From Perna viridis (lineage: Eukaryota): a stretch of 64,000 nt of DNA. The notes under the pieces were generated by a model that was not told the DNA's origin, did no database searches, and saw only the letters and a list, made by a program, of their open reading frames with translations. Below are positions 20,374-60,504 of the stretch, piece after piece (positions within the stretch are counted from its first letter, which is position 1; the number at the start of each line of letters is the position of its first letter). The translations under genes and the position numbers were made by a program. The DNA is taken from positions 48,428,862-48,492,861 of the forward strand of contig CM074511.1 of the NCBI GenBank assembly GCA_037379345.1. The letters are read 5' to 3'.

Positions 20374-20519
20374 TCAAGAATCACGATCTCTGACTTTCTT
20401 TTTCACTTTTTTACTTTTTTCATATCTAATTGTCTCGGACTCCAGTGCACTTAACTCCATAAGTCTTTGTTGAAAAGAAGGAGGAGCACCAATAACAGGA
20501 TCTGTGTATCTTGGTTCAG
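20374..20519 (-). CDS. C8orf89: C8orf89-like gene, terminal constant exon C4: (A)EPRYTDPVIGAPPSFQQRLMELSALESETIRYEKSKKVKKKVRDRDS*
   Basis: Strong acceptor (ttgttattttttttttag|), phase 1 matching C3, TGA at 20376-20374. The peptide matches my recollection of the conserved C-terminus of vertebrate C8orf89 (DPxxGAPxxxxxRLxxxxxLExxTIRxE plus a Lys-rich tail). Confidence 0.85.
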
Positions 20520-21258
20520 CTAAAAAAAAAATAACAAAAATGTCTCCTCTCATTATTCAGAATAATAAAGATATCAAATGAATGTAAAGCTGAGATGTAA
20601 AACACAGAGTATTGTAAACACTGTACCAGGAATTAATTATTGAGATACAGATTAAAAAAAAAATTGAATGCTAAATTATCTATCCTCTATGACAAGATTA
20701 TTTTCTCTCACAAGACATTGAATTTCAAACTTAAATTCCCTATTTTGAAACCCTTTTTCTTGACACTGATATTTCTTAATCAATGTAAAGGTTGGCAAAA
20801 AAAAAGATGTTTTTACATACTAACATGCAGCCCAATAATGCTTACATTTACATTACAGGTACTTGTAAACAAGGTTTTCTGGTATGTATAAAGGCACAAT
20901 TATAGCTATCAAACAGCATTTTCTTACTGCAAAGGCACCTTTACACTTACAAGAACATCAAAATGGATTGACTTTAATCAAAGAGAAGGGAGATACAAAA
21001 TTTGTTGTATAAAAAATGTGTTAGATAAAAAAAAGCGGGAATGAAATCAAGAGGGTCCAGCCTACAAGCATCTGTAGTATTTTTAGAAGCCTAAGAATCC
21101 TACATGCTTTCAGAGTATACAACTGTCAAATAAATAGATAAATCACTAGTGTTACCTGACACTAAAACGTAAACCAATCATCAAATGGAAGATTGTATCC
21201 TAAAAGGTATACCGGAATAAAATGCTATCTATATCATCTGAGAGTACTTAGTAGTTAC

Positions 21259-21483
21259 CTTCTTTACTGAAGCTGGACCGTGAGTGAGCTGGAGCATTCT
21301 GCACCATGATTGGTTTTACACTTTTACGCTGGGGAACTGTTGTTGAACTACTAGAGGATGACACCATTGATACACTTTTGCCTGTAACATTTTGAATACC
21401 ATTGGCACTATTAGATCCTGAGTTTTTCTGGGCATTAGGGCTCCAGATTGTACCCATAGCAATTAAATCATCAGATTCTCTAC
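21259..21483 (-). CDS. C8orf89: C8orf89-like gene, constant exon C3 (GRESDDLIAMGTIWSPN...HSRSSFSKE), phase 1-1
   Basis: Acceptor tttccattatag|, donor AAG|GTAACT, 225 nt open and in frame with C2 and C4. Confidence 0.85.
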
Positions 21484-22283
21484 CTATAATGGAAATAGCG
21501 CAAGTGTGAGTAGTAATGTGGCATTTGACAGATGACGTCATTAAGACCTTACTTTAATTGGTTCCCATATAGCACAGTAATATAATTTTTGGGAGTGAAT
21601 TTGTAATTCAATGGCAAGGCATCCTAAAACCCATAATTTCTTCAAATACTGATTGAAAAAAATTAATAAGGGAATTTTTCTATTGCCAACTAAGGACAAC
21701 AGTTGTTGGTTTCCTAGGTGATGATTCTTCTACTACATTCAGATATCTATATGGCTAAAATATCACAACAGAAACGAAACAAAGAACTGATAAAACTTTG
21801 GTTAACCTATATCTTCTTCTCTGTTCTACTATACCATATAGAAAATCCATAAAAAAGCAGGTATAAATAGATTTATTTTGACCTAATTGAAATCTACCCA
21901 TAAATAAATGATTAAAACTGAGGGTAACTCTCTGTTTTTACCTGACAATGATGATTAAAATAAAATTCAATTAAGCTGGGTCTAGAGACTGTGTCACATC
22001 GACTTATTTATTTCCTGCAGCATCAAAATAGTAGAATTATTTGAACTTTATCTTAAATGGAGTTATAGTGCTGTAAGTTTATCTATAATCGAATAGATTT
22101 CTTTATACCATTAAATAAAACAACAACTGCATTAGTAGGTGTTATGACTTTATTTCTTTTAACAAAAAAAAATCTTATTGCTTAATATCACATGGGAGAA
22201 GGTCATACGATGCCAAGTTGAAAGTAGAAAGTTTTTCGTTTTCTTCTTTTCATCAAACTACCATAGAAGTTCTCCCAATAGGA

Positions 22284-22355
22284 CTCTTACACATGATCAC
22301 AGATTAGTTCAATTATCTACTCTTACACATGATCACAGATTAGTTCAATTATCTA
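22284..22355 (+). repeat. 36-bp tandem duplication
   Basis: ctcttacacatgatcacagattagttcaattatcta x2. Confidence 0.9.
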
Positions 22356-22614
22356 CCCTGGCAAGCATACAACAATATTCTCACCCTTAATGCATGTAAA
22401 CATAAAATGCCCAACCTTCATATAAATTTTATCAAGACCTTTTTAATAGTTTAAGCACAGCAATGTTTACAATTGTACATTGATGAACTGACAGACAGAC
22501 GTGTGGAGATGTCAAATGACTTTCAGGTATACAATGTTCAGTTTTACATTTATTTCTATGTAATTAGCTTAGTCATTGTAGCCTTATATTAAGTGATGTA
22601 CTTCAAAAGCCTTG

Positions 22615-23083
22615 CCCCCATGCAGGTCCGGGTGTCAGGATAATAGGCCCACAGCAGTGCTAAGCTTGTTGTAAAAGGCGACTAAATAGTATCTCAGAAC
22701 CCTGGCCAGAGCTACTGGGTTGTGTGCCCTAGGTGGTGGAATGGGGTACCCCTGGGATGTTACATGCTGGGGTCGTCAGGCCATAATACGGAAAACCCGA
22801 CTGCAAACCATAGTCATGCAACGTGTTGTGAAAAATGCCACGTTTCTCGCACATTAAAGAACTCTTCTGTGGTATTCTCTCGGAGTAGGAACCATAGGGC
22901 TCTATCACAGGAGTCTAAATTGCCTGACCCTACCCACCTCTCCCTATTTCCAGTAGCATTCAAAATTTGTCGACCCATTATCCTTGTGTATCATCCCATT
23001 TATCATTTCATGTTCATTGCCTGAATATAGTTGAAATATTGCTGCTCAGGTGTTAAAGCCCAACAATCAATCAATCAATCATT
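22615..23083 (+). mobile_element. Full-length SINE-like retroposon with Nin/Deu-like central domain and (CAAT)n tail
   Basis: 10-bp target-site duplication aaaagccttg (22605-22614 and 23084-23093); central gcacattaaagaac motif; 3' tail gaaatattgctgct...gttaaa...caatcaatcaatc; related copy at 41488-41812. Confidence 0.8.
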
Positions 23084-23354
23084 AAAAGCCTTGTAGTATA
23101 CATATAATTTTTTTAGAGAAGGCATGCAGTATGAATTTTCATCGACTAGAAAGTAGTTTTTCTAAAAAAGTAAGCTTTAAAAAAGTGTCCAGGTAGCACA
23201 ATATCAATATACAACTGAACACCTACACACTATTTTTAAACAGCTGCAATTTCAAGGTAAAAGTGTCTACCAAACATTTTAATTAATCATTGTTAGTGAA
23301 GGAACACTTGTGAAAGGTATATTTTTATACTTTAACCTTTTAAACTCTCTTTAC

Positions 23355-23535
23355 CTATTTTAAAACTTGTTAAAAACTTACTGTGTCTTATATTATAGGC
23401 CAAAAGGTGCCTAACAACACTACTGTTAATTCTTGGCAGTTTGTCCCGACCTTCTGTGTCCATTATTTTAAATCGTACATTACTATTATCTTTCCATGGC
23501 GTCCACATAATATCATTCAAAATTAAGTTTTTCAT
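23355..23535 (-). CDS. Putative internal alternative first exon splicing to C3 (MKNLILNDIMWTPWKDNSNVRFKIMDTEGRDKLPRINSSVVRHLLAYNIRHSKFLTSFKI), phase 1
   Basis: 60 open codons from ATG to ATAG|GTAAAG; phase 1 matches the C3 acceptor. Confidence 0.55.
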
Positions 23536-24949
23536 TTTTCAGAAACAAAACCGATTCTTTTGGTGTCATGAAGGTATAAAAAACACAAGAAGTTTGGAGA
23601 AAATCATTCCAATTAAGAAATTCTGTAACTAAATCCGTCATGTTGATTAAATAAAATCCCAATTATTCAGCCACAGTCCATTGTTATTATGTGAATAGTA
23701 TCGCATAAAAATAATCAATACCCAGAATGCATCAGAGTGATTAAAACAACAGATAATGTTACATATAAATGATAAATAATGGAGATCCATTATGACAAGG
23801 GAATCAATCTAACACAGAGTTTTATAGCCATTGAAGGATTTCTGTATTTGCTCCGTTATTACAGAAGCCACTTTCTATGGCCATCACAATCTGCCATCGA
23901 CTTTGATTATTTATAAGTATTATTACCTCTATGTATGAAGAACTTGAATGTTGAAATACCAAGAGGAAAAGGTCGTGACTTCTAGGATAAATCAAGACTG
24001 AAATATATTGGATTTGCCTTTCCACCTTAAAATGATTCATTCTGAGTCTACACTGTACCAAATAATAATATTATTGCTCTCACTATGCAAGTGAAGGTAA
24101 AGATTTATTTGAAATGTGTAAATGGACCAACTTTGACAAGTTTCGTCAGTTTATATCAAAATTAAGTGAACTTCACAGTGAGGAGCTACCAAGAAATTCA
24201 CATCAAGTATCAGAAGAATCTGATGAAGTAGAACTATTCAAAAGGTTGTTTGTACCTAGACAACAAGATTGCATCAGACATACTAAATTCTATCTTAATC
24301 CTTGTCACCGTAAAAACAAACTCATATTTGATCTATATAAGTTGTGATTGCAGGTCCATTTCTTAAGGAATAAAATTTATTTGAATAACTTGCTTGCAAG
24401 GGTGTTGCCTCCCTCATATTTGTCTTTTTATTGACTAAATTTTCTTAGAACCAAAACTGTCTAGAGTAGGCTGATAGGATCTACAAGTTCATCCCCAAAT
24501 AACATGCAGCATGCTAAGAAAACCAAATCAAAATGCCAATTGAATAGCTACATATATTGCCACTTAGCAAGATCAACAAAGCCAGCTTTACATTGTAGCT
24601 GTAGTAAATCTGAATGATAATGCAAATGGTCTTAAATGTACACAAGGGCTTTCTAATATAAAATGGCAGAAAAATATTTTTAAAAAAAGTACCTCTTGTG
24701 AACAGCTAAAGATTCAACGACATGGTATAGACCTGTTAAACATATCCCAACCCTCCTCTAACCTAAAATATGGGATCTAACCCTAAATAATGAGAAAATA
24801 TGAACACTGATTTCCTTAACCAGAAATGATATGTAAGTGATTAATACAAGTATTTTTTAATGCAATATTATTGAAAAAGTTAATTGTAGAAGTGAAGCAA
24901 CTATCATCAAAAGCTTTTTGTTTATTTTACACAGGAAGTCATAGCTCAC

Positions 24950-24956
24950 CATCCAT
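24950..24956 (-). CDS. Possible very short alternative start exon (MD), phase 1, to C3
   Basis: aaaaATGGATG|GTGAGC with strong donor and correct phase; too short to exclude chance. Confidence 0.25.
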
Positions 24957-25244
24957 TTTTAATTTAAAAAAAAATGAATAATGAACAGCCCCTTCAACAA
25001 AAACCCCCACAAAAAAAAAAACAAAAAAAAAAAACAAACTGATCAATAACAATATCCATACAACACAAACTGTCACTAATCGCTCCATCCATGCAAAACA
25101 TGCACCACTGCTACACAGCTCTGACTACCAAGGGGCTTTTAAAGTGAAAGTAGGAATTAGAAATGAAGCCAACAGATAAAAAACTTGCAGTGAACAGATC
25201 TGAGATGCAAGGCAAGCTTAATACCTACAGCAGCCAATCCTTAC

Positions 25245-25308
25245 CATAGTAGGGAACTACAACTGCAGAACACATTAAAGTCATGTACAATTCTTTACAA
25301 AGCTCCAT
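25245..25308 (-). CDS. Possible alternative first exon (MELCKELYMTLMCSAVVVPYY) or 18-nt cassette microexon (25245-25262), phase 1, to C3
   Basis: Donor ATG|GTAAGG; ATG preceded by an in-frame stop; internal acceptor ttctgcag| would give an in-frame symmetric microexon. Confidence 0.35.
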
Positions 25309-25993
25309 CTGTGACAATAACTACCTATTTCATCAGTGATTATCAATCTCCACTTGGTTGAAGGCAATGTCCAGTAATCAGATTTTAGTAATAATTTGGT
25401 CATAATTAGATTTCTAACTATGAAAGTATTGTTGACCATGATGTTTTTGTGGATTTTATATTCAAATCGAAACTGAACATAAAAATATTCACAGAAGCAA
25501 AGAAATAAGATTCATTAAATTTTTGGTGAAATCTTGAAAACTGAAACAGTAATCTAACATCACCTGATTACTGGTCAAGTGTGTTTAAACATTCACTGTC
25601 TTTTTTGGAAACATTTACTGTTTTTATAAGTTATAATTTTACGTGCTTGATGAAATTTATCAAGTTTATGCATGTACACATGATATTGCTTTAGCTGGTA
25701 TCAAGGAGAAAATTTAAGGTGAGAATTTTTTTTATCCAATTAAAGCAATATCCAGAGTTTTAAAGTTGTCAATAAAATTGTTGGATTTATACTTTAATGT
25801 GTAAAGCAAAATTTCAACTCAAAAACATCAGACTGACAGTATTTATCAATTCCTGACTGATAACAGAAAGCAAAATAGAAATACTTTTATATCACTAAAA
25901 AGTTCAGTTTTGGCAACTAATAATTAACTATTCATAAGTATAAACCCAACATATCCAAAGCACTTTATGTAAATATTTTCACAGTATACCAAC

Positions 25994-26146
25994 CTGAAGT
26001 GTAATTATTTCCCCTAGAACCATACAAGGGTTCTCCTTTGAGGAGATTTGTCCGTAAACCATTAGGACGATACTGATTGCTGTTTTTCCCGGGATTTGGC
26101 AGTATAGGCCGCAAATTGTCTTCACTCTCTTTGTTATTGAAAGAAA
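25994..26146 (-). CDS. C8orf89: C8orf89-like gene, constant exon C2 (VSFNNKESEDNLRPILPNPG...GEPLYGSRGNNYTS), phase 1-1
   Basis: Acceptor ttatttatcttgcag|, donor CAG|GTTGGT, 153 nt open in the frame set by C1; GC-richer than flanks. Confidence 0.85.
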
Positions 26147-28216
26147 CTGCAAGATAAATAAAGCACTATTCAGTCATTTGTGCTAGTGCTGTTAGCTACA
26201 AAAGGCAATTAAATTGTAGTATAAATTATACACTATATTTATTACAGCTTCATACCCCGTATTGTAAAGACCTTATTTAAAAAGAAGAAAGTGAGCATTA
26301 TTCATTTTACACCATGAATGTGTTGTGCATCAAAATGGTGACATGACAAACAATCTCAATGAAGTTTTAAACACGATAATACACCACATGTGATAAAACA
26401 AACATTGTCACTAGACTACATCATACATACATTTCCCCTTTCCAGATATAAGATATGGCTCTCCTTTTGGTTTTTTTGGACAATAATATTGCCTGAAGAT
26501 CATACTTTTATCCATAAAATCCTAAATTTTAACGTACTCAAATGGCAGCCATTTTTGTAATAAACCAAGATAGAGGTACAATGTATACCAACAAAAGCAA
26601 TATTTACAAAAGATATTTACAACTCAATAATATCTTTCTTTGTAGCCTACAGTAGATTTTAAAATTGACGTTTTCTTTACACTTTCACTTCAGTAAACAT
26701 CTCAGACTATTCTTCTATTTTCAAAATAAAATAAATTAAGCCTAATTAAAAGAAAGCAAAGACGGACCAATAGGAAGCCATTTGAGTAAAGATCGTCTAA
26801 ATTGTATGGTTGCTAAGACTATTTTGTTGACTTGTCTTTATACGATTTCAGTCCTGTGGAGGACTTCAGGTAATTATATATTGTTGACATATAAAATGAA
26901 TCCTAATAATAGAGGGGGATAATGGCATTACACATATTATATATTCGATTACCACCTTGATAAATGATGTTCTTTATATAAGCTGGCCTACATTTTTGGA
27001 AGACGAAACCCTTTAAAAATTAGGTCTATAGCAGCACAGCTTTCCTTGTGTTCCCTAATAGCATACGTAAAGTGGCTTGTGGCTGTCATATTTTTTTTAA
27101 GTGCATATGAACACAACAAAAATTGATGTGTTACTACAGATTGTAGGAGAAGAGACATACAATCTAGTCACACAGGAATGGAAGAGGATATAATGAGAAT
27201 TCAAGACCCCTCCTGAGTATACAATAACTGGAAGAATGTCTATACTTTGTCCTTGTTCTAAGAGTGTCATTCTGTGGTGTAATCATATCATAAATCTTCA
27301 CAAGCACATTGTATATTTAATAAATAATCTGAAAAGCTAGACCTTAAAATTTATACCATCAAATGTGTTTGTTTAGAAATTAAAAGTTTTAATTTAAAAT
27401 TGAATATAAAAGTTTAAATAACAGTTTATCATTTTCATTTATCACACCAATAAATTCTGAAGTGTGAGTAGCAAAATACTTAGGTTCCGTTAGGTAAAGC
27501 TCAAAAGACTTAATTAAACAGTCCTATAAAGTAACAGCTTTGAAGTATTCATTAGCTTCTTGGATACTGATTATACAAAAGTCTTCAATAATCACTTTCT
27601 TTTTATACTTATTTTTATTAGATCACTTATTCTTCTTTAAGTGATCTTTCTAACAGTGTGAAGAAATTTAACAGACACACAGACCTAAATCATAGACACA
27701 TGCACTGTATGGCATGATCATGTGATGATATAATATACAGACCTTGATGTTAACTAGTCCATGGCATGTCACAATTGGGCTGGGCCAAGGTTTTAAGCCA
27801 ACCAAATATGTGGCATGATCATGTGATATTATCAGTTTTAGGGTATTTCAAACCTGCATAAAATGATAACCTACCTACATAAGGTAAAGCTTGGAGTTCT
27901 AAAGAGATTCAGTACTGTATACAAAACCAATTCAGATATTTTGCAAAGGCTTCTGCAAAACCTTATAACTTCTAAATGGAAAGTCAATTAAATTCTTATT
28001 GTCTTTGATTGCTAAGGGATTCAATAATCAAAGTTCTAGGTATTTCATGGCATTCCTGACAGCCCAACATTTACAGACAGGGTATACCTATATCACAAGA
28101 TCATCTGAACTCCAGTAAAAAGATAAATATAATGTAACTCAATCATGTACTATATATAACATTTGGTAGGAAGTTATCAATCGTAGCAGGTTCACTAGTT
28201 CATATAAAAAACTTAC

Positions 28217-28235
28217 CAGAATAAGAATTATTCAT
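28217..28235 (-). CDS. Possible short alternative start exon (MNNSYS), phase 1, to C2
   Basis: ATG preceded by an in-frame TAA; donor CTG|GTAAGT; phase matches C2. Short. Confidence 0.3.
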
Positions 28236-28548
28236 AACCAGATTTTAAATGTATAAAGTGTTACATCACTAATAAAATAAATACAACTTGTACTGAACAA
28301 CAAAGTTTTCAATAGGTCAAAGTTAAATATTGAATTTAAAAGTGATAATTCTAAGTATTGAATTCAAGCCAGGAGAAAATTTGTTTGCCTAATCCAAAAC
28401 TAAAGAATCTCATCTTATCAACCTGCATTGGCCATGTTTAAAGTTCCTTCATAGATTTGTGCATGTTACTAAGGACTTACTACTGTGAGAGAATAGTAAC
28501 AGCATATAACATCTACTGCTAAGTTGACCCTGACAATGTCAAACATAC

Positions 28549-28763
28549 CTTTTTCTATTGATAATGATTTTCTAGAACTGTTTTTGCTGAGAGGGCGCCT
28601 GTTGTTGTAGTCGACTAGGTTATTAGAACTGTGGCGGTCTTTCTCCTTACTGTATTCAATAAAGCTGTTTTGTTTGATTTCATCCAGTTGGGGAGAATTC
28701 CGAACTTCGTTTCCATACAATATATCTGGGTTGGAATATGGAACCGTTGGCGTACTCGAAGAA
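28549..28763 (-). CDS. C8orf89: C8orf89-like gene, first constant exon C1 (xSSSTPTVPYSNPDILYGNE...RKSLSIEK), phase 2 in, phase 1 out
   Basis: Acceptor ttttgtctctttgcag|, donor AAG|GTATGT, 215 nt within ORF 28469-28813. Confidence 0.85.
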
Positions 28764-29671
28764 CTGCAAAGAGACAAAATTATTTGAATTATAGTTGAAA
28801 CAAACAAAACCAATCAATATTACAGGCAAATTGAAATACAACACTAACATAGAAATAGAATTGAAAAAAAACAGTCAATGGAGGCATTCACAGATCACTG
28901 GGTCTGCCTTGGGTTTAATCTAAATAGTAACAGTACCCTGGGTCATTGATTCCTAATATCATCTAGGCTAAAAATCGTAAAAGTCAAGATTTAAAAGAAA
29001 TGGACTCTGTATAATATACTTGGAGTTAATTATACCCTTAGAAAAGTAGGGACAAAAAAGTAATAACTAAATCAATAAATATGTAGAACATTTCTTTTAA
29101 TGTGTAAAAACTTAAAAGATACATAATACAGATACTTAAACTTAATTCAAAGTAAATAAAATATGGTTAACAAAGATACAAGTATTGCATAAGTCAATAA
29201 TCAAATGTATTTAAAGAAGACATTCAGCTTTTAGTGGGAAAATCATTCATAAATCAGGGTTTGACACTAAACTAATCTTGCAAGGTAGCCCACATGACTC
29301 TTTGATAGATAAACATTAGGTAGTCCTGAAATTAATTTTGCAGTCTCCTGTTCTTTATAGGGCTAATGAAATTTTAAGAATTAATTTAGGTAGCCTAAAG
29401 GACCACCAACTGAAATATAAAGATTGTCCTTAAGTAACAATATCCCTAATATATTCATATTGGGTAATTGAAATTTAGCTTTGGAATTGCAGAAGCTACT
29501 CATTACTGTCTGCAACAAGGGAAGAGTTTGTGTTTCTATTCCAGCTGCAACTAATATCAAAACAGCTCTCACACATCAAAGCAAACCTAATTAATGTATG
29601 ATAGTACTTACTTAATGTACACTAAGCTGCATTTTTAAAGTAAAGTTTTAAGCTTTCTCAGATTCAAAATA

Positions 29672-29851
29672 CTGTGAAAGTACTTAAATTCGTGGATACC
29701 AATTTTTGTGGATTAGGGACGAAACACAAGTTCGTGGATTCTTGAATCTGTGTTTTTGAGGTTTTCAGTATACACACAAATGGGATTCTCTTTTTCGTTG
29801 GGAACCAAATTTCGTGGTTTAGCCTACCCACAAACAACAGTTCTTTCACAG
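29672..29851. mobile_element. MITE with TA target site (Tc1/mariner-like)
   Basis: ta|CTGTGAAAG ... CTTTCACAG|ta with internal ttcgtgg repeats. Confidence 0.65.
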
Positions 29852-30317
29852 TAGCTATATTTGTTTTTCATTAGCTATTTAATTAAGACATTACAACTTG
29901 TGACTTCTGTTTAACAGAGAAACAACAGTACTCATGTCAATAATTTTAATAAATTCTTTATTGTAAACTGTAAAGAAACATTACATCAATAATTTTTTAA
30001 GAGAATATTACAAGACCTGATAGTCCCCAATATAACTCAGTTATCATATATTATTCCACTGTAAGGGACAGATTTTCAGAATTCAGTCAACAAACCAATT
30101 TTGTAAAATTTATCATTCCTTATTATATAATTATATTGAAATTCTCAAAAGCTTATAATCAATGAAAACATGAATCCCTTATAAACAGACCAAAACCATA
30201 TAAACAGATGATGTTTTTCCCCAATTCAAAAAAGACTATATGTGATCAACCAAATACAGTTGTAGAAGAATAAAATAAAAAAAGTTTGATCCTGACTGCC
30301 TGATTACCTCCCCTTAC

Positions 30318-30394
30318 CTTGGTATTTCAGCTATCAAAGTTTTTAATGTTAGATTTGTTTTTCGAGCAGCATATCTACGAACATGGTAATCCAT
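30318..30394 (-). CDS. Variable first exon V9 (MDYHVRRYAARKTNLTLKTLIAEIP+S), phase 2
   Basis: In-frame TGA two codons before the ATG; donor AAG|GTAAGG; 77 nt = 25 codons + 2. Confidence 0.6.
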
Positions 30395-31702
30395 AGTTCA
30401 TAAGGAATTCCTTTGTTTGTCTGATATATCAGCATATCTACATAAACAAAGTGTTTTAATAGTACGAAAATTATCTCTTCACACAAATCAATCCCTCAAG
30501 ATCTGTTTGTCTATAAACATGTAAGACTGTACAGTCTTCATTTATAAAACATTTAAACATTTATTCTGACACAAGTTCCGTTGGTAATCGGAACATGCCC
30601 AACATGTTTACAGAACACTGCGTTAATACAAGTGTAATTTAATACTTATAAAGAAATGGGTTTAGTATATCCTAAATTGAATTTGAACAATATAAATCTA
30701 CTTTAAAAGTCCAAAGATTAACCTTTATTGTGGTTAGGAAAGCTAAATTACCATACATATATCAGTTATCAACTATTCATTCCTAAAAAAAAAACCTCAA
30801 TATATAGTAGTAATAAGAGTGAAACACAAAATATTCAAAGCTGAGGTCAGCTTCAGTAAGTTATCGGCTTGACAGTGGGTTATGACCCAAATCAATTTAA
30901 ATAGCTAAAATGTCCTATTGTTAAAGATATTTATAGACAGTGACAGCCCCCCCTCTCCCCCCCCCCCAAAAAAAAAAAGAAAAAGTATGCTGAATGAGAT
31001 AAACCTAGATAAGGTAGACATGATCAAGAATATCCCCTAAGGCAAAAACAGGACCAAAATGTACCAAAAACTGACGGCAATTTTCTCTAAAAATAAAATT
31101 TGACCCGTACATTATGGTCAATAGCAGTCCTAAAATTCAAAAAAGAAAACTTCAAGAATAAAGCTACAGGAATATTAATGTCATTAATGATACAAAGCAA
31201 AGGAAAGCAATCATTATGGATAAGGAATATCAAATTATTTAATTTCCAAATTAAAAGGGTGATGGAGTAAAACAAAGTATCTCTATGAGATTAATATCAC
31301 CCTCTATAAATATTGTGACCATATTGAATAGGGGTGGGGGCACAATATTTTTTTTAGAAGAAAATTGTATAAAAATACAGGAAAATCTTATCACAGTTCA
31401 AATCAACTGCTCTGCCTTCCAGAATTCTTCAAAAATTATCTTCAATGAACCATGAATGCAAGCAAATTTTTTAAGATCTTTTCATAAAGCACATTATATC
31501 TCTGTAGTTGGTTAAGTAATTCTAGATAAATCAGATCCATGATTTGTCAAATTTTCCACTATTAGTCTCACTAAATCAATTATCTGTAAACATATTACAG
31601 TCAAAAACCATTTAATTCCTGCAGTGCCAAGAAACAATGAAACAAGCTAGATATAGCATGCACAATTAAAAAATAAAATGTCAAAATATTACTGTAACTT
31701 AC

Positions 31703-31818
31703 AGATTTAGTGAGTTTACGTTTCGCTGATTTTTCACCCGAACTGGATATAACCATGGACATTGGGGATAAATCACTGTTGCCTTCTTCACTGGTCGAAG
31801 AAAGTCATAATCCTGCAT
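31703..31818 (-). CDS. Variable first exon V8 (MQDYDFLRPVKKATVIYPQCPWLYPVRVKNQRNVNSLN+L), phase 2
   Basis: aaaATG after an in-frame stop; donor TCT|GTAAGT; 116 nt = 38 codons + 2; CpG-retaining island in a CpG-poor intron. Confidence 0.6.
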
Positions 31819-34114
31819 TTTGATGATGAACGTAAGTCCAAAGATCCATCAATTAACCAAAATCATGACTTTTTACACATCTCACCAAAGTAAGAAATAT
31901 TCATACATGTAACTCATTCTTCATTTTAATGGCAGTTCATAACTGCAGTAAATCATTAGAAGTGTTAGCTTTTCACGGCACTAAAATTTAATACCAACAC
32001 TTCAATTAAAAATTCTCAATTTAATATTTCAAAAAAAGTAATTCTTAAGTCAACACTTATGAATTGTAGGGATAGGTCAAGCAGTTCACATCATGTTTGA
32101 ATTGTATTTAATACAAAAGTCCTCCTGAACAGCCCAAGCCTTTCAAATCAAACACAAATCAACATATGTAATCATATGTAAATTTTCCACAGTTTAACAG
32201 AAACGGCAGACTCTGAGTCCTTATTTGTTACACTTCTTCAGAATCGATTTTAAACAACTTTAGTGCGCTTGAAACCACATGAATAAGATTTATGACTAAA
32301 TCATAGGTTTAAATAAATGCACCATCACTATCTTTTGTATTTTATGCCGAGATTTTAAAACAGTTCTTATCACAGATTTTTATCTATTGTCCTGATAGTT
32401 ACATCTGATCAATATCAATTCCAAAAAGTTTAAAATTTTAATAACCATGTCGCTGAGACTCCGATGGATCATATATATGTAGAGCACTCCATCCTGTTTA
32501 TAATAACACTATTATAGCCACATCTGAGTAGCAAGCGCCAGTTAATATATCAGAAAACTCTGCAAAATTAAAGTTTTAAAAGGACAAAAGTCAATACATT
32601 ATTGTTTATATTAAAATTGTTTAAAGTCAAAGGATAAACAATGAGCTGATTTTTGAATAACCGATAATCCACCTCATTCAATTTAACCTTTCATTAAAGA
32701 ATAGGAACTCACACAATAGCACTACAAAAGAAAAGTCCCTGATAAAAACAGCATTCAAAATCCAGGGGATCAACATTTTGTTTAGTGATTGATTCATATC
32801 TGAATGCATATTCTATATGTCATGTTTAAGAAATCATAATGCCTTAACTTTTAAAAACCACCACCAAAATTTGCTGTTTATAACCAGAGTTGGTAAAGTG
32901 TCAAGTTTCATACTGCTTTATAAGGGGATCATATTACATGGTAGTACATGTCCATTTCATCAAAGTCCCCATATAAAAAATATTCATTTATCTTATGCAA
33001 GTTTCAAAATAAGCTTTTCATGGCATAATATATCTACACAATAAAAGAATTATATATTGAATTTTATTTGAATTGGACCTTTAAATAAAGAATTTTAATT
33101 TCAAAAGTATGGTTTGGTAATATGGTATAAGGGAGATAACTCATGCTAATACTAAGTTTTGTTTTCTTAATTACAAGTTTTATTAATGGTGAACACTTAC
33201 ACAAAATTTAAAAACCATTTCATTAATGGTACAATGATTTTTGTTTCATCTGCAATCTCATATTAAAGTATCAAAAATGAATTGACTTTGGGGTTACATA
33301 TAGTTGCTTCAGCAGAGGGTGTTATGTTAGTGTAACATACTCCAAAATGTATCACCCACAATTAGGTATTGATTGATATATTTAATTTGTCTCCTTAACA
33401 CCCTGAAGCATAGAGCAATCAGCTTAACATCTGAAAGCATTCAGAAAAAACTGTCAAAGGCATAAACATAGCAATAGTTTGGAAAAAGGTATGACACATT
33501 TATTTAATCTAAAAAAAAAGTTTTTATCAGTAGGCTAACTGTGAGCCTACAGGGAATTGTCATTTGTTTTATTACAAACTATGAAATGTTTACTTTTTAG
33601 TATTTGACAAACCACACTTGATGTTCCCATCTTAAATACCAACATAAAGACACTAAAAATAGGTCCACTAAGTTTATAACACAGACAATGTCTTGTGCGC
33701 TTTCACTAATGTTCCATGGTATATTGAATAAGTATAAATATATGAATGCTACAAGAAAGAAAAAACTTGTTTATAAGATTAAAATATATAACATACATGG
33801 GACAATATAAAAATGATGCCATTTAAAGGATGTGGGCCATTTAACCAAGGATTCTGACCACAAGAATGGGCCAATTACAAAAGCCATTTAAATGTCCAAA
33901 ACTTACTTTGAAATTTGTGAAAAAAACAAACTTTATTATTGTTAAAATTGCAGATTTGTAAACGGTCAGGTGGGAGAAAAGTACAAAAAATTAGTAACAG
34001 AAATTGATAAAAACATATTTTTCACAAGTTGGCACTATATTGAACACCGTCAGTTCCTTACATTCAGTAAGACTACATAGTGTCTTTTCTACCACTAAAA
34101 CGCATGTTTTTTTT

Positions 34115-34263
34115 CCATCCTCCCAAGTAAGGGTTTTGAGTCCACTCTCAACCGGAGAAGCCACAAATCGAATTGGCTGGATGATACCAGCTTAATATGA
34201 ATGAGTGATGTCAGGAGTTTGAGAGAGTGAGGATGGACTCAAAACCCTGACTTGGGAGGATGG
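34115..34263. mobile_element. MITE with ~29-bp terminal inverted repeats
   Basis: ccatcctcccaagtaagggttttgagtcca ... tggactcaaaaccctgacttgggaggatgg; both flanks are g(t)n, a possible TSD. Confidence 0.75.
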
Positions 34264-35129
34264 GTTTTTTCACGCAATTAAAGAAAACAAATCTTCTGCT
34301 AGAGCAAGAAAGGCTGATAACCTTCTTTTCAAGTTACAAAAAACACCCAAAAACAAAACACACGAGCAGTAGACATTACATAGCTTACTAGGACATCCTG
34401 ACTATGTGAATGTCCTAAGTCTTTAGTCCAACTGACAAGACAGTCATACCAATGTAGGGAAAAGATTTTAGATCAACACTAAATCTATATTTTTTCATTT
34501 ACTACTTAACATTTTCTTGTCACTTCTTAGTTTAAAAAATAGTCTTGTCATAACTTTTTCACTGGAGAGTTTGTATATAAGAACATTTATTGTCATGGGT
34601 TTGGCCAAACGTATAAATCTAAATAGTCTAATTTTGGCATCAACTAGATGCTTTTCTATGAACAAAATACTGGGAAAGTTTTATTCTAAAATATCTTAAC
34701 AAGTGTTAGTGTCATCTAATTTTCTGGACTGCACCAACTTTCACTATTTTTTCTTATGACAAATAAGCTTGAAAAATTGTACCTGCTAAATGATTGCTCA
34801 TAGAAAAACACCTATCCTTTAAAGACACTCCAATAAAAATTTCAAGTAATACCTGCACCTTAACACAGAATAATGCTCTTTTGACAATAATCTAGTACCA
34901 ACCTCTATTATACAGAATATAGACAAGTCAAAACAGAAAATATCACAGTAAGCCAAATAGGAAATAGGCGATATATTTCAGTAACACGGCAGTATCCTGA
35001 GATAGAAAGTATCATGCATTAAGATCAATAAGAAAACTTTCAAGTTGCCTATACAGTACCTCAGCAGTCTTTAAATGTAATCACACATTATGATATCTGA
35101 TATCACTACACTTTATATACAATACTTAC

Positions 35130-35326
35130 TGTGTCGAGCTGCAGAAATAAGGCCCTGATGTTGCTGGCCTAACTCGTTCTCTTTCAGAGAGTAATGTCAC
35201 GGAACTGTTCCTCCCATAAACATTTCTCAATCGAGAGTTTTGTCTTAGAGAAAAGAACTGCCCAGTTTTTGGCCTTCCTGCCGAAGTTATTATCATCACA
35301 TTTTGAAATCTTTCAAAATCACTCAT
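35130..35326 (-). CDS. Variable first exon V7 (MSDFERFQNVMIITSAGRPKTG...RLRNVYG...RPATSGPYFCSST+H), phase 2
   Basis: ORF 35126-35326 ends at donor ACA|GTAAGT; 197 nt = 65 codons + 2. Confidence 0.7.
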
Positions 35327-38183: not shown

Positions 38184-38431
38184 TACACACTGCATATACT
38201 CATAGGAACCCACTGATATTTTTTCCTTGTCCTATTTCTCTGCGAGGCAGAAAATACATGTTGAACATTCAACATACAGTATTGTTTGTTAGGGAGACTA
38301 CAACAACACTCAGTTAAATCCTTAGATGATCGTTGAGAATGACTACTCTGTAGCAAGTCATACCGTTCAAACTGGGCTTGTAACAGTAAACCCTGCTGTA
38401 AAGTTTTCCACTGCATAACACTTTTCTCCAT
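38184..38431 (-). CDS. Variable first exon V6 (MEKSVMQWKTLQQGLLLQAQFERYD...WVPMSICSV+Y), phase 2
   Basis: The stop of ORF 38183-38431 overlaps donor GTA|GTAAGT; 248 nt = 82 codons + 2. Confidence 0.65.
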
Positions 38432-54668: not shown

Positions 54669-57600
54669 AATACAATGTCTGGCATAACAGAGGCAATTCA
54701 AAGTTCTATATTATTTGTCAAGTCCAGATTGGAATTAGTTTTTATGATTTATCTTCAAAATACACAATATATATTTCTAGTCAATATATATACAAACTGG
54801 CATGAACAGCCAAATAAAATCATCAAAACTCTTAAAAAGAATTTTCCCTATACAGTATTTATATTCATAAACACTTAAAAATGCAGTCCACATTATAAGA
54901 AGTTGAGTTAAAAACCTTATCCATGAGAAAAATGAATTTTGAAATAACCTGGAACGTAGCTTATTTTCCGTCATCTGATAGTAAAATGTGTTACTTTTGT
55001 GTCTGTAAAAATAAATCAAGTTCAGGAATAATGTTTATAAAACTGAAATCAAATACAAACAATATAAAATACTTTTAATGTTATTTTTTGTGGTCTATTA
55101 TTTCCCTTTGGTATAAAGTGCCATGCCATAATTTAAAAAATAGGGCATTAGAAAACATTAAGTAACACAGTGCTATAAATGGTGAAAAAATGGCCTAACT
55201 CAAGAAGAGCCTTTTGGATTATGCTGAAAATTGAACTTGAACTGTTTATTTTTATTTTATAGCATTTATCAACTTAACAAAGTTTTAAAAAAAAATCAAT
55301 TAGTTATCACCTGGAAACCAATGAAGGGTGTACATTTTGTGTGGTGGAATATTAAAATTAAAAAAATTACAAAATCAATTTTCTAACTCTTGAAGTAATA
55401 AATAATATTTGCAAGGAGTAATGTCACATATTTTCTGCACAAAAAAAAACAGTACCAAAAACTGTTCTCTTAAATATGTGTTTTTTAAGTTGTGTCAAAA
55501 TCTTTATTTTCCAATCCTTTTAATCTTCATCTAAAGGATTCATACTCTAAAAGTAACTTAAAGAAGAATATTAAACATATACAACACCTTGTATGACATA
55601 CCAGACTTTCAACAATGCAAGTACATCACAGTGTAAAAAGGGAAGTAACTCTAAAAGACCATGAAACCCTTAACACAACAAATCAATGTAATTAAATGCT
55701 GTGGTTTTGCATCTCATGAGTTTTAAAAGCAAATTAAAGAGATAATCTAATCTGCATCACTGCACATACTTCAGTTTGTCTGGATAATGTACACTCAACA
55801 TGCAACATTTCAAGCTTTGTTTCGCATCATTTGTAAGCAATATTCCTGCCAGAAATTCACTTTTATGAATCAAATCTTTTCAAAGTATTTCAGTGAAGTG
55901 GTAAATTAAGACCCTCTAAGGTATAATACAAAAAATCAAAAACAAAGTTGTACATTATAAACATTCTACCATTCAAGAAAATTTTTTACCAAAATTTGCA
56001 ATGTTACGAAATTCAAAAGCAATAAACACTGAGGCTTTATTCCTTGTATTGCACATGGTAGAACTTCTTGGTGATGGATTTGGCTTCCTATTTTGAAAAT
56101 TTTTATTTTGCATTCTTCTTGTATACTATATCTTGGATTAAAATATCCCTATGTATTTGGTTTTAATGGTGATTATGAGAGATTATTCCTTGAAACAGAA
56201 TATGAAAATTTACAATACTAAATAAACAATACTAAGTGGTAAATTTGTATACATGAAGTATGAAGTGTCATATGCTGTAACTACTTTATAAACTCTATCT
56301 GGTGTCTTTCAATCATCCTAGTTTTACTGAAAAGAACTTAAACTTAGATACGATCAAATGGATGTATTACATACCCATTATAAGCATTGGTAGTGAAAAG
56401 TATGTGTTAAAGCAAGATGTATCAACCAAAAGTGTGGTTAAACCTCTTTCAGACAGACAAATTTAGTTTTTATGAGTTCAAAACAAACTGAAACAAATAG
56501 AAGCGATTCAAGAAAATTTCTGGTTTTGACTGGTTCCCATTTTCAAGGGTAATTTTAATCAGGTACCAGAGTAAACAACATCAAAATAAATCTATCACCT
56601 TATTAAGTAAAAGAAAATCAATCAGTGGTATTATGAATAAAATTGCTTCATAGAAATAATGGAATACAGTTAAAAGACAAACCTTAGGATTACACATTGA
56701 TTTCTGGAGATGTAACTAACAGAATGCATTAGAAAAAGACAATTGATTTCCGGAGTTACAACTCATTTTGACTGAATCATATTACAATTGTAGTCAAGAA
56801 TTCTATCACAATTAGACATGATTGATAGTCTAATAAAGAATTGTAGAAAACAGAAACAATCTGAAAGTGAATATGCATGTTTTACAGACTAAATTTAGTT
56901 AAAAAAAAAACATATATACAATATTAAATAATAAAGACAAAAACAATGCCAGGAGTACATGTATCATAACAATACCTAAAGAATTCAATGTACATGTATC
57001 ATAAACTAAACCAATTGTTTTGACTGTAAGTGTACAAAAATGTACAAGTATCATAAACTATACCTATTGAAATCTCTGTAAGCATCCAATATTTTCTGTG
57101 CTCTCTTGCTATCAATCCTTACAGATAGAATATTTCTAGCACATTTTTGTTTTATTTTCACTGTTCCAATACCTCTAGTACTGTCCTTAGACACACCACC
57201 TTTTCTCTCTCTTTTCAAGATGCTCATATTTTCAAAATCATATAGTAACTTAACAGCAAGGGCTAAGCTATTACTCAAAAATGTTCAATTTTCCTGTCAT
57301 GTCAATAGATGTAAGCAAAATTAAATTGGGTTTACTTAATTACAATGACACTGCAATATGAGTGATTCAAACCCCCTAAGCTCAGCAAGAAACAGAATTT
57401 GTAAATTAAAATGATTAAAATTGATTGGCATATATTTTGTTGAATAAGTAATCATAAATATTTTTAAATATATACAAATTACTAATACAGACCACAATTA
57501 AAGTCAACTTCACTGAAAAATTATTCAATATTAGAAAAATCAAAATTACTGAACATAATTAAAAATACAACTTTTTAAATTAAAAAAAAAGATTGAAAAA

Positions 57601-58070
57601 AAACCATGTTGTCTGTCATGAATTCATGCACAATAACAATGGTCTTAATTTCTTTTGTTATTCATTTTTGATGTTACATCATCATGTAAATGTGTTGACC
57701 TGACCATACCACATTCTATGGTCAACCTTTTTAAGTGCCAATGAAACATCAAAAACAAAATATTCAATGCTTATAATTTCATAATATTTCTCTTATTTTA
57801 TGTATACTTAGAAAATAGGCAATAAGAGTAGTCCACTTATCTGTGGGTGTGGCATATATAAATACCTATCAACTCACAAAACATCACATGTAAAACCAAT
57901 TTACCAATAAGGTCAGGGTATTTCAGTGGTATGAACGCTAATTGTAATTATTTTCTGATTAAACAAAATCACAAACAACAAAATAGCAGGAAATAAACTG
58001 GATAAAAAACTTCTTACGAGGAGTGTAATTTAGAGAAGCAACTATATATCAGATAAGGTATAAATCTTAA

Positions 58071-58752
58071 AGCTGCATTAGCTGCCAAATTTGTTCAGTT
58101 CTGATTCTACTGAATTTTGCTGATTCAATGAAATAAGTTTGTAGTAATGCAATTGAAGCAATAAATGCCGATAATACCTACAGAATATTGTGAAAACAAC
58201 GTTTTTTTTAATCAGAGAAGATCAATAGCTTTGATCTAATTATTTTTTGGCATTACGTCCAAGGTTTGCAGACAAGCCATTCACCTGGGTTAAAAAATAA
58301 CAATAATGGATAGACAGGTAAGCATGTGTCTTGTTTTCATATCATTTCATCTAGTAATTGGTTAGTGTTAAGATGAATAATGACCATATTTGTGCCACAT
58401 TATATCACAATACAAAAATTTCAAAAGGAACCTTGCGTTATAACTTTTTTCTTTTACAGCTTGAGTCAGTCGGTCTTCCTTGCCGTTGAATAACCACTTT
58501 CACTTTGCAATCAGATTTGTTATTTAAGATGTACATGCGCAGATTAAGGTCACCAGAAGTCACATGCATACAAATTTAACTTTTCTTGCAAGACAATAAA
58601 TAAATAGACACCTATTTCATGTATTTAATGCATTTTATTTGTTGATATCAAATGAAATTATACAAGAAAAGTACAATTTAGTAGAAATAATTTAAGGTTA
58701 AGGCATATTTCAACAGAAACAAAAATTTACGAAAATGACAGCTAATGCAGCT
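58071..58752. mobile_element. Non-autonomous Kolobok-like DNA transposon
   Basis: ttaa|AGCTGCATTAGCTG ... CAGCTAATGCAGCT|ttaa: 14-bp perfect TIR and TTAA TSD. Confidence 0.8.
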
Positions 58753-59454
58753 TTAAAAGGAGCATTACCATACATTCCTGTGATTTTCAAAAATTTTCAA
58801 TTCTACGTTTCCAAAATTCAAAGTTTACATTTCTAAAATTAATCAAATTACCATTAATTGTGGGTCTTATTTTTGCACCACAGGGGCTTGAATTCATGAA
58901 TTAAATCCACAAAATTGCCAAAAATATTTGGCAATTTTATGGATCTAGCTCTGGAACTCAAACAACTGTGGAATGGAGATCAATACACAAAACTTGTAAA
59001 TCCTAATATTATCACCAGGAGTGGAGATGACTCCATTAGGATTGAACAGAGGAACAGTTTATGACTGTAATTCGTTAGTTCTTATTTTAACATACAACTT
59101 TTTTACATTTCAGTAAATTTATTAAATTGTCATATTCAAGGTGATTTTAGTGCCGACTCAATTTTAATAACTTTTTATTTTAATAAAATAAATATCTTGC
59201 TCAAAAACGTCCTTCAAACACCATATGGAGAGTAATGGGTAAGAGTCATATTTGGCAAGCGGAAGATAGATTGTTTTAGGTTGTCAAACAAACTCCAAGT
59301 AATTTTGCCAGGACTGTTCTTGCCATAAGTAAAATACATATATAAATTAGATCAAAGGTCAAGTTTAAATGTTAATTTGTACCAAAACATCTAGCGTTAC
59401 CATAAAACAATGTAATGTCAAGGATTGGACACATAAGTCATTTTTTTTCTTGAT

Positions 59455-59600
59455 CAGGGGTAAAAAGTAGGAAATTAGCTAGTAGCCCAGACCATATTTG
59501 TGTTTAATATTTTCTATATGTTCAACTAAATTGGGAGCCAAGCTCAAAATCTACCGGTAGTAGCCATGGGCTACTGGGCGACTGCTAATTCTTATCCCTG
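59455..59600. mobile_element. Short CAGGG-ended MITE
   Basis: caggggtaaaaagtag ... ctaattcttatccctg; internal agtagcc / ggctact motifs. Confidence 0.5.
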
Positions 59601-60325
59601 TTGATGACTAAGTTGAAGGTCAAATAAAGTTCAGAATGCTGGGATACACACTTCCAGTCTTTATCACACATGGTAGGTGGTGGTTTATAGAAAGGCAATT
59701 GCCTCAAATCATAGAACTGTTTACAAAAAAAACATTGAAGCTTCTTTGTCAAGTGTGGAGCATTGTATAATGGTATGAGTGATATGCCTTCCCTAACAGC
59801 TTCTGTACACTATTTACTGGTATGTAAATGTTATCCTATTTCTGTCTGTATGAAGGAGCATTTGTTTATCTGATTTATCAGCATAACTATGTCATTATTC
59901 AGTAGAATTATTCATTATCATAACTGTAGCAAATATTTGTCAACTCATTCCTAATCATTAATTATTCACATCATATGGAGTAAGGCAATCAAACTTTCAA
60001 TTATTCTGAAAGTTCTCTGATCAGCCAATAAAACTACACCAGCAAAAAGATATGGAATAGTCTACTGACTACACTATGCCTTCTATCCATTATCAAGTAA
60101 AAATATTTGCACAGTCTAGTGCATATAGGTTTGCTGGTAAAACTTAAAGATTGGTGGAAGTTTGATTCCAGAGATATTAGATGTATAGAACAAATAGAAG
60201 GAATAATGCAAGTTAACCATAGAGTGTTCTGAGAATCTTGAAAAAAGAAAGTCGTACACCATTTAAAGTTAAATTAAAAAATCTCCTTTACAAATTCTAC
60301 CATACTTATATGTGACTTGACTTAC

Positions 60326-60504
60326 CAGCTAGCACTGATGGCTTTCCTATGCTGGTAATAAACTCTGGGTTTACTATTCAATCGAGCACTCAGCAATCTA
60401 CAGTGTTTAAGTAAATCAGACTGCCGGCCTTTCCCAATGCATAGAATATCTTCATCACACCTTAAAATCCTTGTCACTTCAAGATACTTTGATGTGTCAT
60501 ACAT
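60326..60504 (-). CDS. Variable first exon V1 (MYDTSKYLEVTRILRCDEDILCIGKGRQSD...HRKAISAS+C), phase 2
   Basis: ORF 60322-60504 ends at donor CTG|GTAAGT; gaaATG start; 179 nt = 59 codons + 2. Confidence 0.65.

Follow-up and report, generated by a model that had tools for sequence, protein, structure and literature searches.

The Constant Exons and Their Product

The window analyzed here, a 64,000-nucleotide stretch of the Perna viridis genome, carries on its minus strand four constant exons that join in one continuous frame of 245 codons plus a stop, with canonical AG/GT borders: constant exon 1 (C1, 28549–28763), constant exon 2 (C2, 25994–26146), constant exon 3 (21259–21483) and constant exon 4 (20374–20519), which ends in the stop codon. 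These are the borders and the frame proposed in the first-pass annotation of the sequence, including the 2 nt that an upstream exon must supply at the start of C1, so that splicing into the common acceptor at 28763 takes place in phase 2. C1 encodes the conserved beginning of the constant part (SSSTPTVPYS...) and has 20 homologues by phmmer. Its joint to C2 (26146^28549) was found in same-organism RNA in runs X1 and X5, and the loose end of C2 in a same-organism RNA contig runs on into constant exon 3 at 21481; both C2 and constant exon 3 were also matched by tblastn of orthologues. Because constant exon 3 is 225 nt long, skipping it would preserve the frame, and it is absent from the Mytilus coruscus model P0002. 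Constant exon 4 encodes a conserved C-terminal helix and a polybasic motif and is 98–100% identical to Mytilus (tblastn of orthologues); the 3′UTR extends below 20374, with the transcript of a relative aligning as far as 20214. Across the constant exons, identity with Mytilus orthologues is 81–98% and lower with scallops, and dN/dS is 0.03–0.07. The gene is single copy in the genome (C1 and V6 were searched among others).

The region had been described as C8orf89-like, a label that survives as a marginal Pfam match confined to the last 42–70 residues. Constant exon 4 alone matched DUF5537 (PF17690) with an E of 3.3e-7 and 30.6 bits, above the gathering cut-off of 28.4 bits, and the orthologues P0005, P0006 and P0007 scored 31.6–31.9 bits; membership is nevertheless marginal, since other orthologues scored 23–26.5 bits, under the cut-off. 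The matches fall short of most of the 160-position model, covering positions 116–157 in the window exon and 67 or 88 to 157 in orthologues. Pfam searches found no match at E up to 1 in constant exons 1–3, taken exon by exon, and none in the other open reading frames of the window (five of at least 110 aa, one of 109 aa). Homologue searches for non-mollusc relatives, C8orf89 included, returned molluscs only, and an Atlas search for such relatives gave a best match of 0.75, which is uninformative. A literature search on DUF5537, C8orf89 and the LOC identifiers given below returned nothing relevant, C8orf89 appearing only in gene lists. The protein is uncharacterized, and its family turned up in molluscs only within the homologue searches run. 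An orthologue Atlas model has a pLDDT of 0.38, on which basis the protein is predicted to be disordered: the constant part would be a Ser-rich, disordered 245 aa ending in a conserved helix and a polybasic tail.

Variable Exons and Their Conservation

Upstream of C1, nine minus-strand segments (V1–V9) each start at an ATG, have a length that leaves 2 nt after the last codon, and are directly followed by GT(A/G)AG, all as first described. The coordinates below are those of the coding parts, from ATG to donor, and the exons may reach further 5′. An in-frame stop precedes every V ATG, 1–11 codons upstream. Eight of the nine, the exception being V3, align from Met1 to RefSeq or transcript-derived Mytilus orthologue isoforms, and several types also match isoforms of scallops, Mya, Haliotis, Pomacea and Aplysia. 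The orthologue RefSeq models are LOC143067591 (Mytilus galloprovincialis, X1–X19), LOC127699443 (M. californianus, X1–X14) and LOC110442007 (Mizuhopecten yessoensis, X1–X11). These models share the constant part and the N-terminal types (V1, V2, V4–V9 and exons beyond the window) with the gene studied here, but come from other species and are automatic Gnomon predictions, not cloned cDNAs, all named “uncharacterized protein.”

V1 (60326–60504; 59 codons plus 2 nt) is 72–73% identical to residues 1–59 of M. galloprovincialis X12 and M. californianus X10 (E 1e-22). V2 (51114–51223; 36 codons plus 2 nt) shows 74% identity to P0043 and further matches to Mytilus X8, X9 and X11 and scallop X11, with a conserved ECVRLRLINVSNIS core, while V4 (46329–46429; 33 codons plus 2 nt) is 76% identical from Met1 to M. 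galloprovincialis isoform X17 (E 6e-11). For V5 (42942–43177; 78 codons plus 2 nt), identity is 73% across residues 1–50 of M. galloprovincialis X14, and its core MVPYDSxKLRFR recurs in Haliotis X8, Mya X7 and Aplysia; a lineage-specific repeat expansion of the KQELKDC type makes up the 3′ third, and 42942 is the sole consensus phase-2 donor in that region. V6 (38184–38431; 82 codons plus 2 nt), present in single copy, is 71–76% identical to Mytilus X8 and 47% to scallop X5, and its Cys-rich and ...WVPMSICS motifs are also found in Haliotis and Pomacea. V7 (35130–35326; 65 codons plus 2 nt) reaches 91% identity to P0044, has matches in Mytilus X9/X10, Haliotis, Mactra and Mya, and shows a dN/dS of 0.04, level with the constant exons. 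V8 (31703–31818; 38 codons plus 2 nt, in an exon extending to at least 31900) is 74–76% identical from Met1 to M. coruscus P0002 and M. galloprovincialis X16, with scallop X10 also matching. V9 (30318–30394; 25 codons plus 2 nt, in an exon extending to at least 30539) is 58% identical (E 6e-4) to residues 1–24 of M. galloprovincialis X18 and M. californianus X14. Of the whole set, V9 is the one whose translation is least assured, because this conservation is the weakest and its ATG is the fifth AUG of the RNA-covered part of the exon, after four upstream AUGs. No homologue of V3 (49498–49520; 7 codons) was found among the orthologue isoforms.

The cross-species comparison suggested by the first-pass annotation therefore bears out conservation from Met1 for eight of nine segments, with the V7 dN/dS alongside. 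Types V5, V6 and V7, together with those at 66.4, 69.5 and 86.2 kb beyond the window, recur in gastropods, and individual N-termini are orthologous between bivalves and gastropods. Gastropods share the array layout, which is annotated in the gene models of related species; a description in a paper was sought and none was found.

As had been noted from the letters alone, the variable exons are mostly unrelated to one another. Profile–profile comparison of 11 V types with hhalign gave a best probability of 9%, that is, no significant similarity, and in this respect the exons do not behave as paralogous tandem duplicates. Many V types do carry a 5-residue basic-hydrophobic motif, [VI]-[RK]-x-[RK]-[LMF], which was defined after the peptides had been seen; if it is a common inheritance, the V exons would be extremely diverged duplicates.

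Transcript Evidence and Extent of the Array

Same-organism RNA reads were assembled over one 6-kb stretch, which took in two variable donors, those of V9 and V8. Both predicted junctions to 28763 were recovered in run X1 as direct joints, 28763^30318 (V9) and 28763^31703 (V8, in an 850-nt contig), so that splice junctions predicted from sequence alone were later confirmed by RNA. The V9 contig covers 30318–30539, including 145 nt upstream of the ATG without a joint; the V8 transcript skips V9, and within the covered 6-kb stretch no joint enters either exon. In the same run the constant contig ends precisely at 28763, which indicates a branch point of the assembly graph there. In run X5, a 2099-nt contig links 28763 to an exon at window-equivalent 69423–69601; its loose end was sought inside the window, not found there, and located 5.4 kb beyond, and the dominant transcript in one run uses this exon 5.4 kb past the window end.

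Transcripts of relatives splice V7, V6, the 66.4-kb exon and the 86.2-kb exon each directly to C1–C4. Transcript L007 covers 38480–38184 (V6) and then joins 28763 exactly, and in L006 the 5′UTR and V7 are collinear with 35498–35142, followed by C1–C4. For the relatives’ V6, V7 and 66.4-kb-exon transcripts, the 5′UTR runs collinear with the genomic sequence preceding the ATG, and the isoforms have no 5′ leader in common. Separate promoters for the V exons are likely, given such isoform-specific 5′UTRs, and orthology suggests the use of V1, V2 and V4–V7 in Perna viridis.

The original proposal of nine exons in 30 kb holds for eight members but underestimates the array, which continues past the window to about 100 kb and includes upstream members that are internal. 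From window-equivalent 20374 to about 100400, the gene measures at least 80 kb (the gene range at the scallop locus is 125.7 kb). At least five further exons, at window-equivalent 66.4, 69.5, 83.1, 86.2 and 95.5 kb, join C1 in phase 2; with the eight in the window (V1, V2, V4–V9), at least 13 exons share the hub acceptor, and the exons joining C1 all end in phase 2 before GT[AG][AG]G. Some members beyond the window are internal exons fed by several first exons: those at 69.5, 83 and 95.5 kb have acceptors, and the 66.4-kb exon (dN/dS 0.04) serves both as first and as internal exon. A Mytilus 16-aa cassette (RSVENTYMYLKQSSAL), the X19 N-terminus and the small first exons feeding the 69.5-kb and 95.5-kb exons were sought in this genome and not found.

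One Gene With Many N-Termini

One constant acceptor thus receives several exons that each carry an ATG and a donor. We consider it probable, at roughly 0.85, that the locus is one single-copy gene in which an array of phase-2 alternative 5′ coding exons is spliced onto a common four-exon C-terminal part. The earlier claim of many N-termini on one C-terminal part draws its support from RNA for V8 and V9, relatives’ transcripts for V6 and V7, and homology for eight of nine segments, V3 being unsupported. The window would represent the 3′ two-thirds of this minus-strand gene. Each 5′ coding exon, with its own ATG and 5′ splice site, would be joined in phase 2 to 28763; a transcript starting at a given V exon would use that donor, and the V exons downstream of it would leave with the intron. 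Start-site choice probably sets the N-terminus, because several V exons look like first exons in which no acceptor is used. The product would be a dozen or more proteins with a common C-terminal part and individually conserved N-terminal peptides of 24–240 aa, which might guide the common part to distinct partners or locations.

The most serious competitor, though an improbable one, accepts the V exons as real but takes most of them to be internal, mutually exclusive or cassette exons: a few far-upstream promoters would serve the gene, and the N-terminus would depend on splice choice, leaving the V ATGs incidental. The acceptors of the 69.5-kb, 83-kb and 95.5-kb exons and the double role of the 66.4-kb exon fit such an arrangement, as do RefSeq models of the gastropod Gigantopelta, which chain a V7-like segment after an 86-kb-type exon and so indicate that some members can also act as internal exons. 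Against it, the in-frame stops shortly before each V ATG exclude read-through from an upstream exon, and orthologous proteins start at the same Met. The collinear 5′UTRs of the V6, V7 and 66.4-kb types, with no leader common to isoforms, likewise argue for first exons, as does the covered stretch, where V8 skips V9 and both join C1 directly.

It is considerably harder to hold that transcripts initiated at V exons are a low-level by-product of promoters lying in introns or derived from repeats, with an untranslated V ATG, and that only the long upstream isoforms make protein. The four upstream AUGs of V9 and the X5 constant contig, continuous into the 69.5-kb exon, would suit this reading, and contig depths in run X1 were 10.9 for V8 and 19.7 for V9 vs 100.7 for the constant contig, depth being a poor measure of level. 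Yet the V peptides are conserved over very deep divergences (dN/dS 0.04), as are the start codon positions, and the same depths, unreliable as they are, sum to 30.6 and suggest that V8 and V9 make up a non-trivial share of transcripts in the covered stretch.

The caveat that exons had been picked partly by phase raises the further prospect that the V segments are chance ATG-initiated frames in a long, AT-rich intron that happen to run up to cryptic GTAAG sites. We compared the region 28764–64000 with a first-order Markov null model (200 simulations). At its 45 minus-strand GT[AG]AG sites, ATG-ORFs of at least 7 codons numbered 6/6/15 in phases 0/1/2, as against 7/5/5 on the plus strand. With at least 25 codons the counts were 2/4/8 vs 1.9/1.9/2.0 expected, and none of the 200 simulations reached 8; with at least 55 codons they were 0/0/4, vs 0.2 expected in phase 2. 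Phase 2 is thus enriched, as the proposed check on donors with upstream ATG-ORFs had anticipated, and phases 0 and 1 lie at chance. Frames of 50–80 codons are common in these 35 kb, but among the ATG-ORFs of at least 50 codons, such a donor marks the end of 4 of 16 on the minus strand and 0 of 21 on the plus strand. The stops at or just past the donors of V1, V5, V6 and V7, first read as a mark of real exons, are indeed present but lend no independent support, because phase 2 followed by G|TAAG or G|TGAG forces an in-frame TAA or TGA. Short phase-2 ORFs (7–24 codons) occur at chance level, which leaves V3 without statistical support and probably a chance match; the suspicion that short segments might be chance applies to V3. 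Against the null model, the RNA joints of V8 and V9 and the Met1 matches and dN/dS of 0.04 across species, a chance origin is the least credible reading of all, rejected for eight of nine V segments and standing for V3 alone.

Comparison With Known Systems

Alternative first-exon arrays are a known route to protein diversity, and the well-studied large ones have paralogous, domain-coding exons. In the clustered protocadherins (Pcdh alpha/gamma) and UGT1A, variable first exons, which are large paralogous duplicates encoding whole domains, are spliced to shared constant exons. The mollusc locus resembles these in its tandem first exons, which each bring a start codon and a 5′ splice site, in the one acceptor of a few constant exons, and in the removal of downstream variable exons as intron. 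Unlike them, it has variable exons encoding 24–91-aa peptides without detectable mutual homology, a protein predicted to be disordered, and some internal members that have sets of first exons to themselves.

The array is large, with at least 13 exons on one hub acceptor and up to 19 annotated isoforms in Mytilus, and distinct in that purifying selection acts on its short, not recognizably related peptides as strongly as on the constant part. Size, unrelated peptides, selection and bivalve–gastropod conservation together argue that each N-terminus has a function of its own. Speculatively, and we regard this as rather doubtful, the locus may be an ancient “address-label” array, in which a dozen or more N-terminal peptides, individually kept since before the bivalve–gastropod split and mostly built around [VI]-[RK]-x-[RK]-[LMF], would each steer the same disordered scaffold to its own partner or compartment in a cell-type-specific manner by promoter choice. 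If true, this would be a very old counterpart of protocadherin-type arrays, with short linear motifs replacing folded domains. The locus offers a compact model for promoter choice encoding N-terminal “labels” on a disordered scaffold, and a good test of mollusc genome annotation.

In TCF4, PDE4D and NRG1, too, distinct N-termini arise from numerous alternative 5′ exons that are unrelated to one another. Like them, the locus described here joins N-terminal peptides lacking mutual homology to one C-terminal part, yields a dozen or more N-termini, and mixes true first exons with shared internal 5′ exons. It differs in belonging to an uncharacterized family (molluscs only in our searches), in its single hub acceptor and uniform phase 2, and in having individual N-termini that are orthologous between bivalves and gastropods.

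Constant Region and Its Orthologues

The four minus-strand exons that the first-pass annotation had joined in frame (C1, 28763-28549; C2, 26146-25994; C3, 21483-21259; C4, 20519-20374) form a single frame of 245 codons plus stop with canonical AG/GT borders, and C1 requires two bases from an upstream exon. The 723-Mb assembly contains one copy of the gene. C4 scores 30.6 bits with Pfam DUF5537, whose cut-off is 28.4, and the match is limited to model positions 116-157 of 160. Given a pLDDT of 0.38 in the Atlas model of an orthologue, the protein encoded by the constant part is predicted to be disordered. C3 is 225 nt long, a multiple of three, and its absence from the Mytilus coruscus model P0002 suggests that it may be skipped in frame; no skipping of C3 was seen in the RNA examined here.

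Homologues were sought exon by exon from the spliced model. A phmmer search with C1 returned 20 proteins, in which C1 begins at widely differing residue numbers and a common constant part follows differing N-termini. The orthologues are all named "uncharacterized protein" and represent isoforms of one gene per species, among them X1-X19 of LOC143067591 in Mytilus galloprovincialis, X1-X14 of LOC127699443 in M. californianus and X1-X11 of LOC110442007 in Mizuhopecten yessoensis. Orthologues also occur in M. trossulus and M. edulis, in the bivalves Pecten, Argopecten, Mya, and Ruditapes, and in the gastropods Haliotis rufescens (up to X11), Gigantopelta, Pomacea, Patella, and Aplysia. No homologues were found outside molluscs in searches limited by shared words and length, which do not prove absence elsewhere. 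Oyster records (Crassostrea, Ostrea, Saccostrea; P0154, P0051, P0053) were returned under names without an isoform label; these proteins have 263-267 aa and an 8-aa N-terminus, MQLRIKFI. Oysters may have lost the array, or it may lack annotation there.

Variable 5' Exons

Nine candidate first coding exons (V1-V9) had been proposed upstream of C1. All nine do start with ATG, have a length of 2 modulo 3 and abut GT(A/G)AG. The supporting argument that their ORFs stop just past the donor is not independent evidence, because phase 2 combined with a donor G|TAAG or G|TGAG sets TAA or TGA in frame and the stop is automatic. The phase distribution itself is informative. Between 28764 and 64000 the minus strand holds 45 GT[AG]AG sites, and upstream of these, ATG-ORFs of at least 7 codons numbered 6, 6, and 15 in phases 0, 1, and 2 (about 8 expected per phase), those of at least 25 codons 2, 4, and 8 (1.9, 1.9, and 2.0 expected), and those of at least 55 codons 0, 0, and 4 (about 0.2 expected per phase). 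Under a first-order Markov null model, the suspected phase-2 excess was borne out, with the values of 8 and 4 in the two longer classes reached in 0 of 200 simulations. On the plus strand, ORFs of at least 7 codons were distributed 7, 5, and 5; among ATG-ORFs of at least 50 codons, 4 of the 16 minus-strand ones but none of the 21 plus-strand ones ended on a GT[AG]AG donor. Phase-2 ORFs of 7-24 codons occurred at chance level, and V3, with 7 codons, is therefore without statistical backing.

Orthologue N-termini were mapped onto the locus by tblastn, with identities given relative to Mytilus. On the minus strand, matches were obtained for V1 (60504-60328; 72-73%, E 1e-22), V2 (51223-51119; up to 74%, also scallop X11), V4 (46429-46331; 76%), V5 (43177-43022; 73%, also Haliotis, Mya, and Aplysia), V6 (38431-38186; 71-76%, also scallop at 47%, Haliotis, Gigantopelta, and Pomacea), V7 (35326-35129; up to 91%, also Haliotis, Mactra, and Mya), V8 (31818-31705; 74-76%, also scallop and Mya), and V9 (30394-30323; 58%, E 6e-4). 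The gastropod matches of V5, V6, and V7 are also evident in the peptides themselves. Matches begin at protein residue 1, and the start codons are thus conserved in position. Of the proposed nine, then, eight stand, while V3 matched no orthologue N-terminus. V3, which lacks support, and V9 are the weakest members; V9 is supported by RNA, yet has four upstream AUGs and low conservation. In V5, about 27 extra codons of KQELKDC(K/R)-type repeats (42942-43022) are missing from the Mytilus, Haliotis, and Mya peptides, and the frame stays open through them up to the sole consensus phase-2 donor.

Further 5' exons lie beyond the window, given here on its coordinate scale. These include 66506/66428-66292 (matches in Mytilus, scallop, Mya, Dreissena, and Haliotis), the internal exon 69601-69423, onto which the first exons 78838-78200 and 74877-74800 are spliced, 86202-85928 with the optional exon 83122-83045 (also Argopecten, Haliotis, and Gigantopelta), and 100409-100179 followed by 95574-95417. 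All exons spliced to C1 terminate in phase 2, followed by GT[AG][AG]G. The 66.4-kb exon (66292-66506, or 2292-2506 of L002, the DNA reaching past the window) has a dual use in orthologues, either as a first exon with its ATG at 66428 or internally, with entry near 66506 at a pair of AGs spaced by 11 nt (CCTCAG TCTGTGTACAG). In Mytilus, a 16-aa cassette (RSVENTYMYLKQSSAL) is optionally included between variable exon and C1 (P0039, P0103, P0105, P0107, P0108), and M. galloprovincialis X19 has the N-terminus MSYLPWKYCK...; neither was found within positions 1-104000 of the extended scale.

The variable exons were described as mostly unrelated, and a profile-profile comparison among 11 V types, with a profile made for each from its orthologues, agrees (best mutual probability 9%). 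A short motif, [VI][RK][LVF][RK][LMF], nevertheless occurs in 4 of 12 peptides versus 0.05 expected from shuffles, and its relaxed form, [VI][RK].[RK][LMFN], in 7 of 12 versus 0.42; neither count was reached in any of 5000 shuffles. The relaxed form is carried by V2, V4, V5, V8, and the exons at 66.4, 69.5, and 86.2 kb, and lies within the conserved core of V2, V5, and the 69.5- and 86.2-kb exons. Since the motif was defined after viewing the peptides, it should be taken as a lead rather than a result. The oyster N-terminus contains a related L-R-I-K-F.

Transcripts and Selection

RNA of the same organism was assessed over 25950-31900, which holds C2, C1, V9, and V8. Runs X1 and X5 both contain spliced RNA with the joint 26146^28549, and a loose end at 25992 leads into C3 at 21481. 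The proposed V9 and V8 donors are both in use, the former in a joint 28763^30318 (contig covering 30318-30539) and the latter in a joint 28763^31703, within an 850-nt contig that skips V9 and extends past 31900. No upstream joint into V8 or V9 appeared in contigs over this interval. The constant contig of X1 terminates precisely at 28763, as expected of an assembly-graph branch, and a 2099-nt contig of X5 joins 28763 to sequence absent from the window, placed at G000:C1:48498287 (window-equivalent 69426). This is the 179-nt internal exon 69601-69423, which has a pyrimidine tract with AG acceptor, a CAG|GTAGGT donor, and the required frame open with phase 2 at its end.

Unspliced intronic contigs of depth 2-4 (26874-27238, 28316-28544, 28913-29093, 30063-30301, 31468-31679) are probably pre-mRNA; no joints from within intron 26147-28548 to C2 were seen in X1 or X5. 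A repeat of about 165 bp at 29666-29834 (more than 4000 candidate genome copies, 87-91% identity) produces a large spike in RNA depth, with a maximum near 1280, and numerous loose ends in three runs. This repeat resembles a SINE- or MITE-like element within the big intron and lies outside the gene model.

Among relatives, Logan contigs encoding P0044 (V7 type), P0021 (V6), P0004 (66.4-kb type), and P0035 (86.2-kb type) have the variable exon spliced directly to C1-C2-C3-C4, with junctions at the corresponding window coordinates, e.g., 38184 to 28763. The 5'UTRs of the V6, V7, and 66.4-kb transcripts are genome-collinear upstream of the ATG, extending to 38480 for V6 and 35498 for V7. If the isoforms had a common leader, their 5' ends should share sequence; they have nothing in common, which supports separate starts, on the basis of transcript ends and not of TSS mapping. 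For V7, comparison with L006, a relative's V7-type transcript, gave dN 0.045, dS 1.12, and dN/dS 0.04; the ratio was likewise 0.04 for the 66.4-kb exon and 0.03-0.07 for the constant exons, synonymous sites being saturated in more distant pairs.

Proposed Architecture

These results show that 28763 is a hub acceptor for many phase-2 coding 5' exons, each conserved in its own right and subject to purifying selection. Each variable 5' exon would have its own promoter, and choice of start site would fix the N-terminus, because downstream V exons appear to have no used acceptor. Attached to the same disordered part, the N-terminal peptides may serve as separate modules for interaction or targeting. 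The array is already caught by automatic annotation in relatives, and we found no literature description of it, nor any paper mentioning DUF5537 or these loci. The same kind of architecture is already known from the protocadherin and UGT1A arrays, as well as from TCF4, PDE4D, and like genes.
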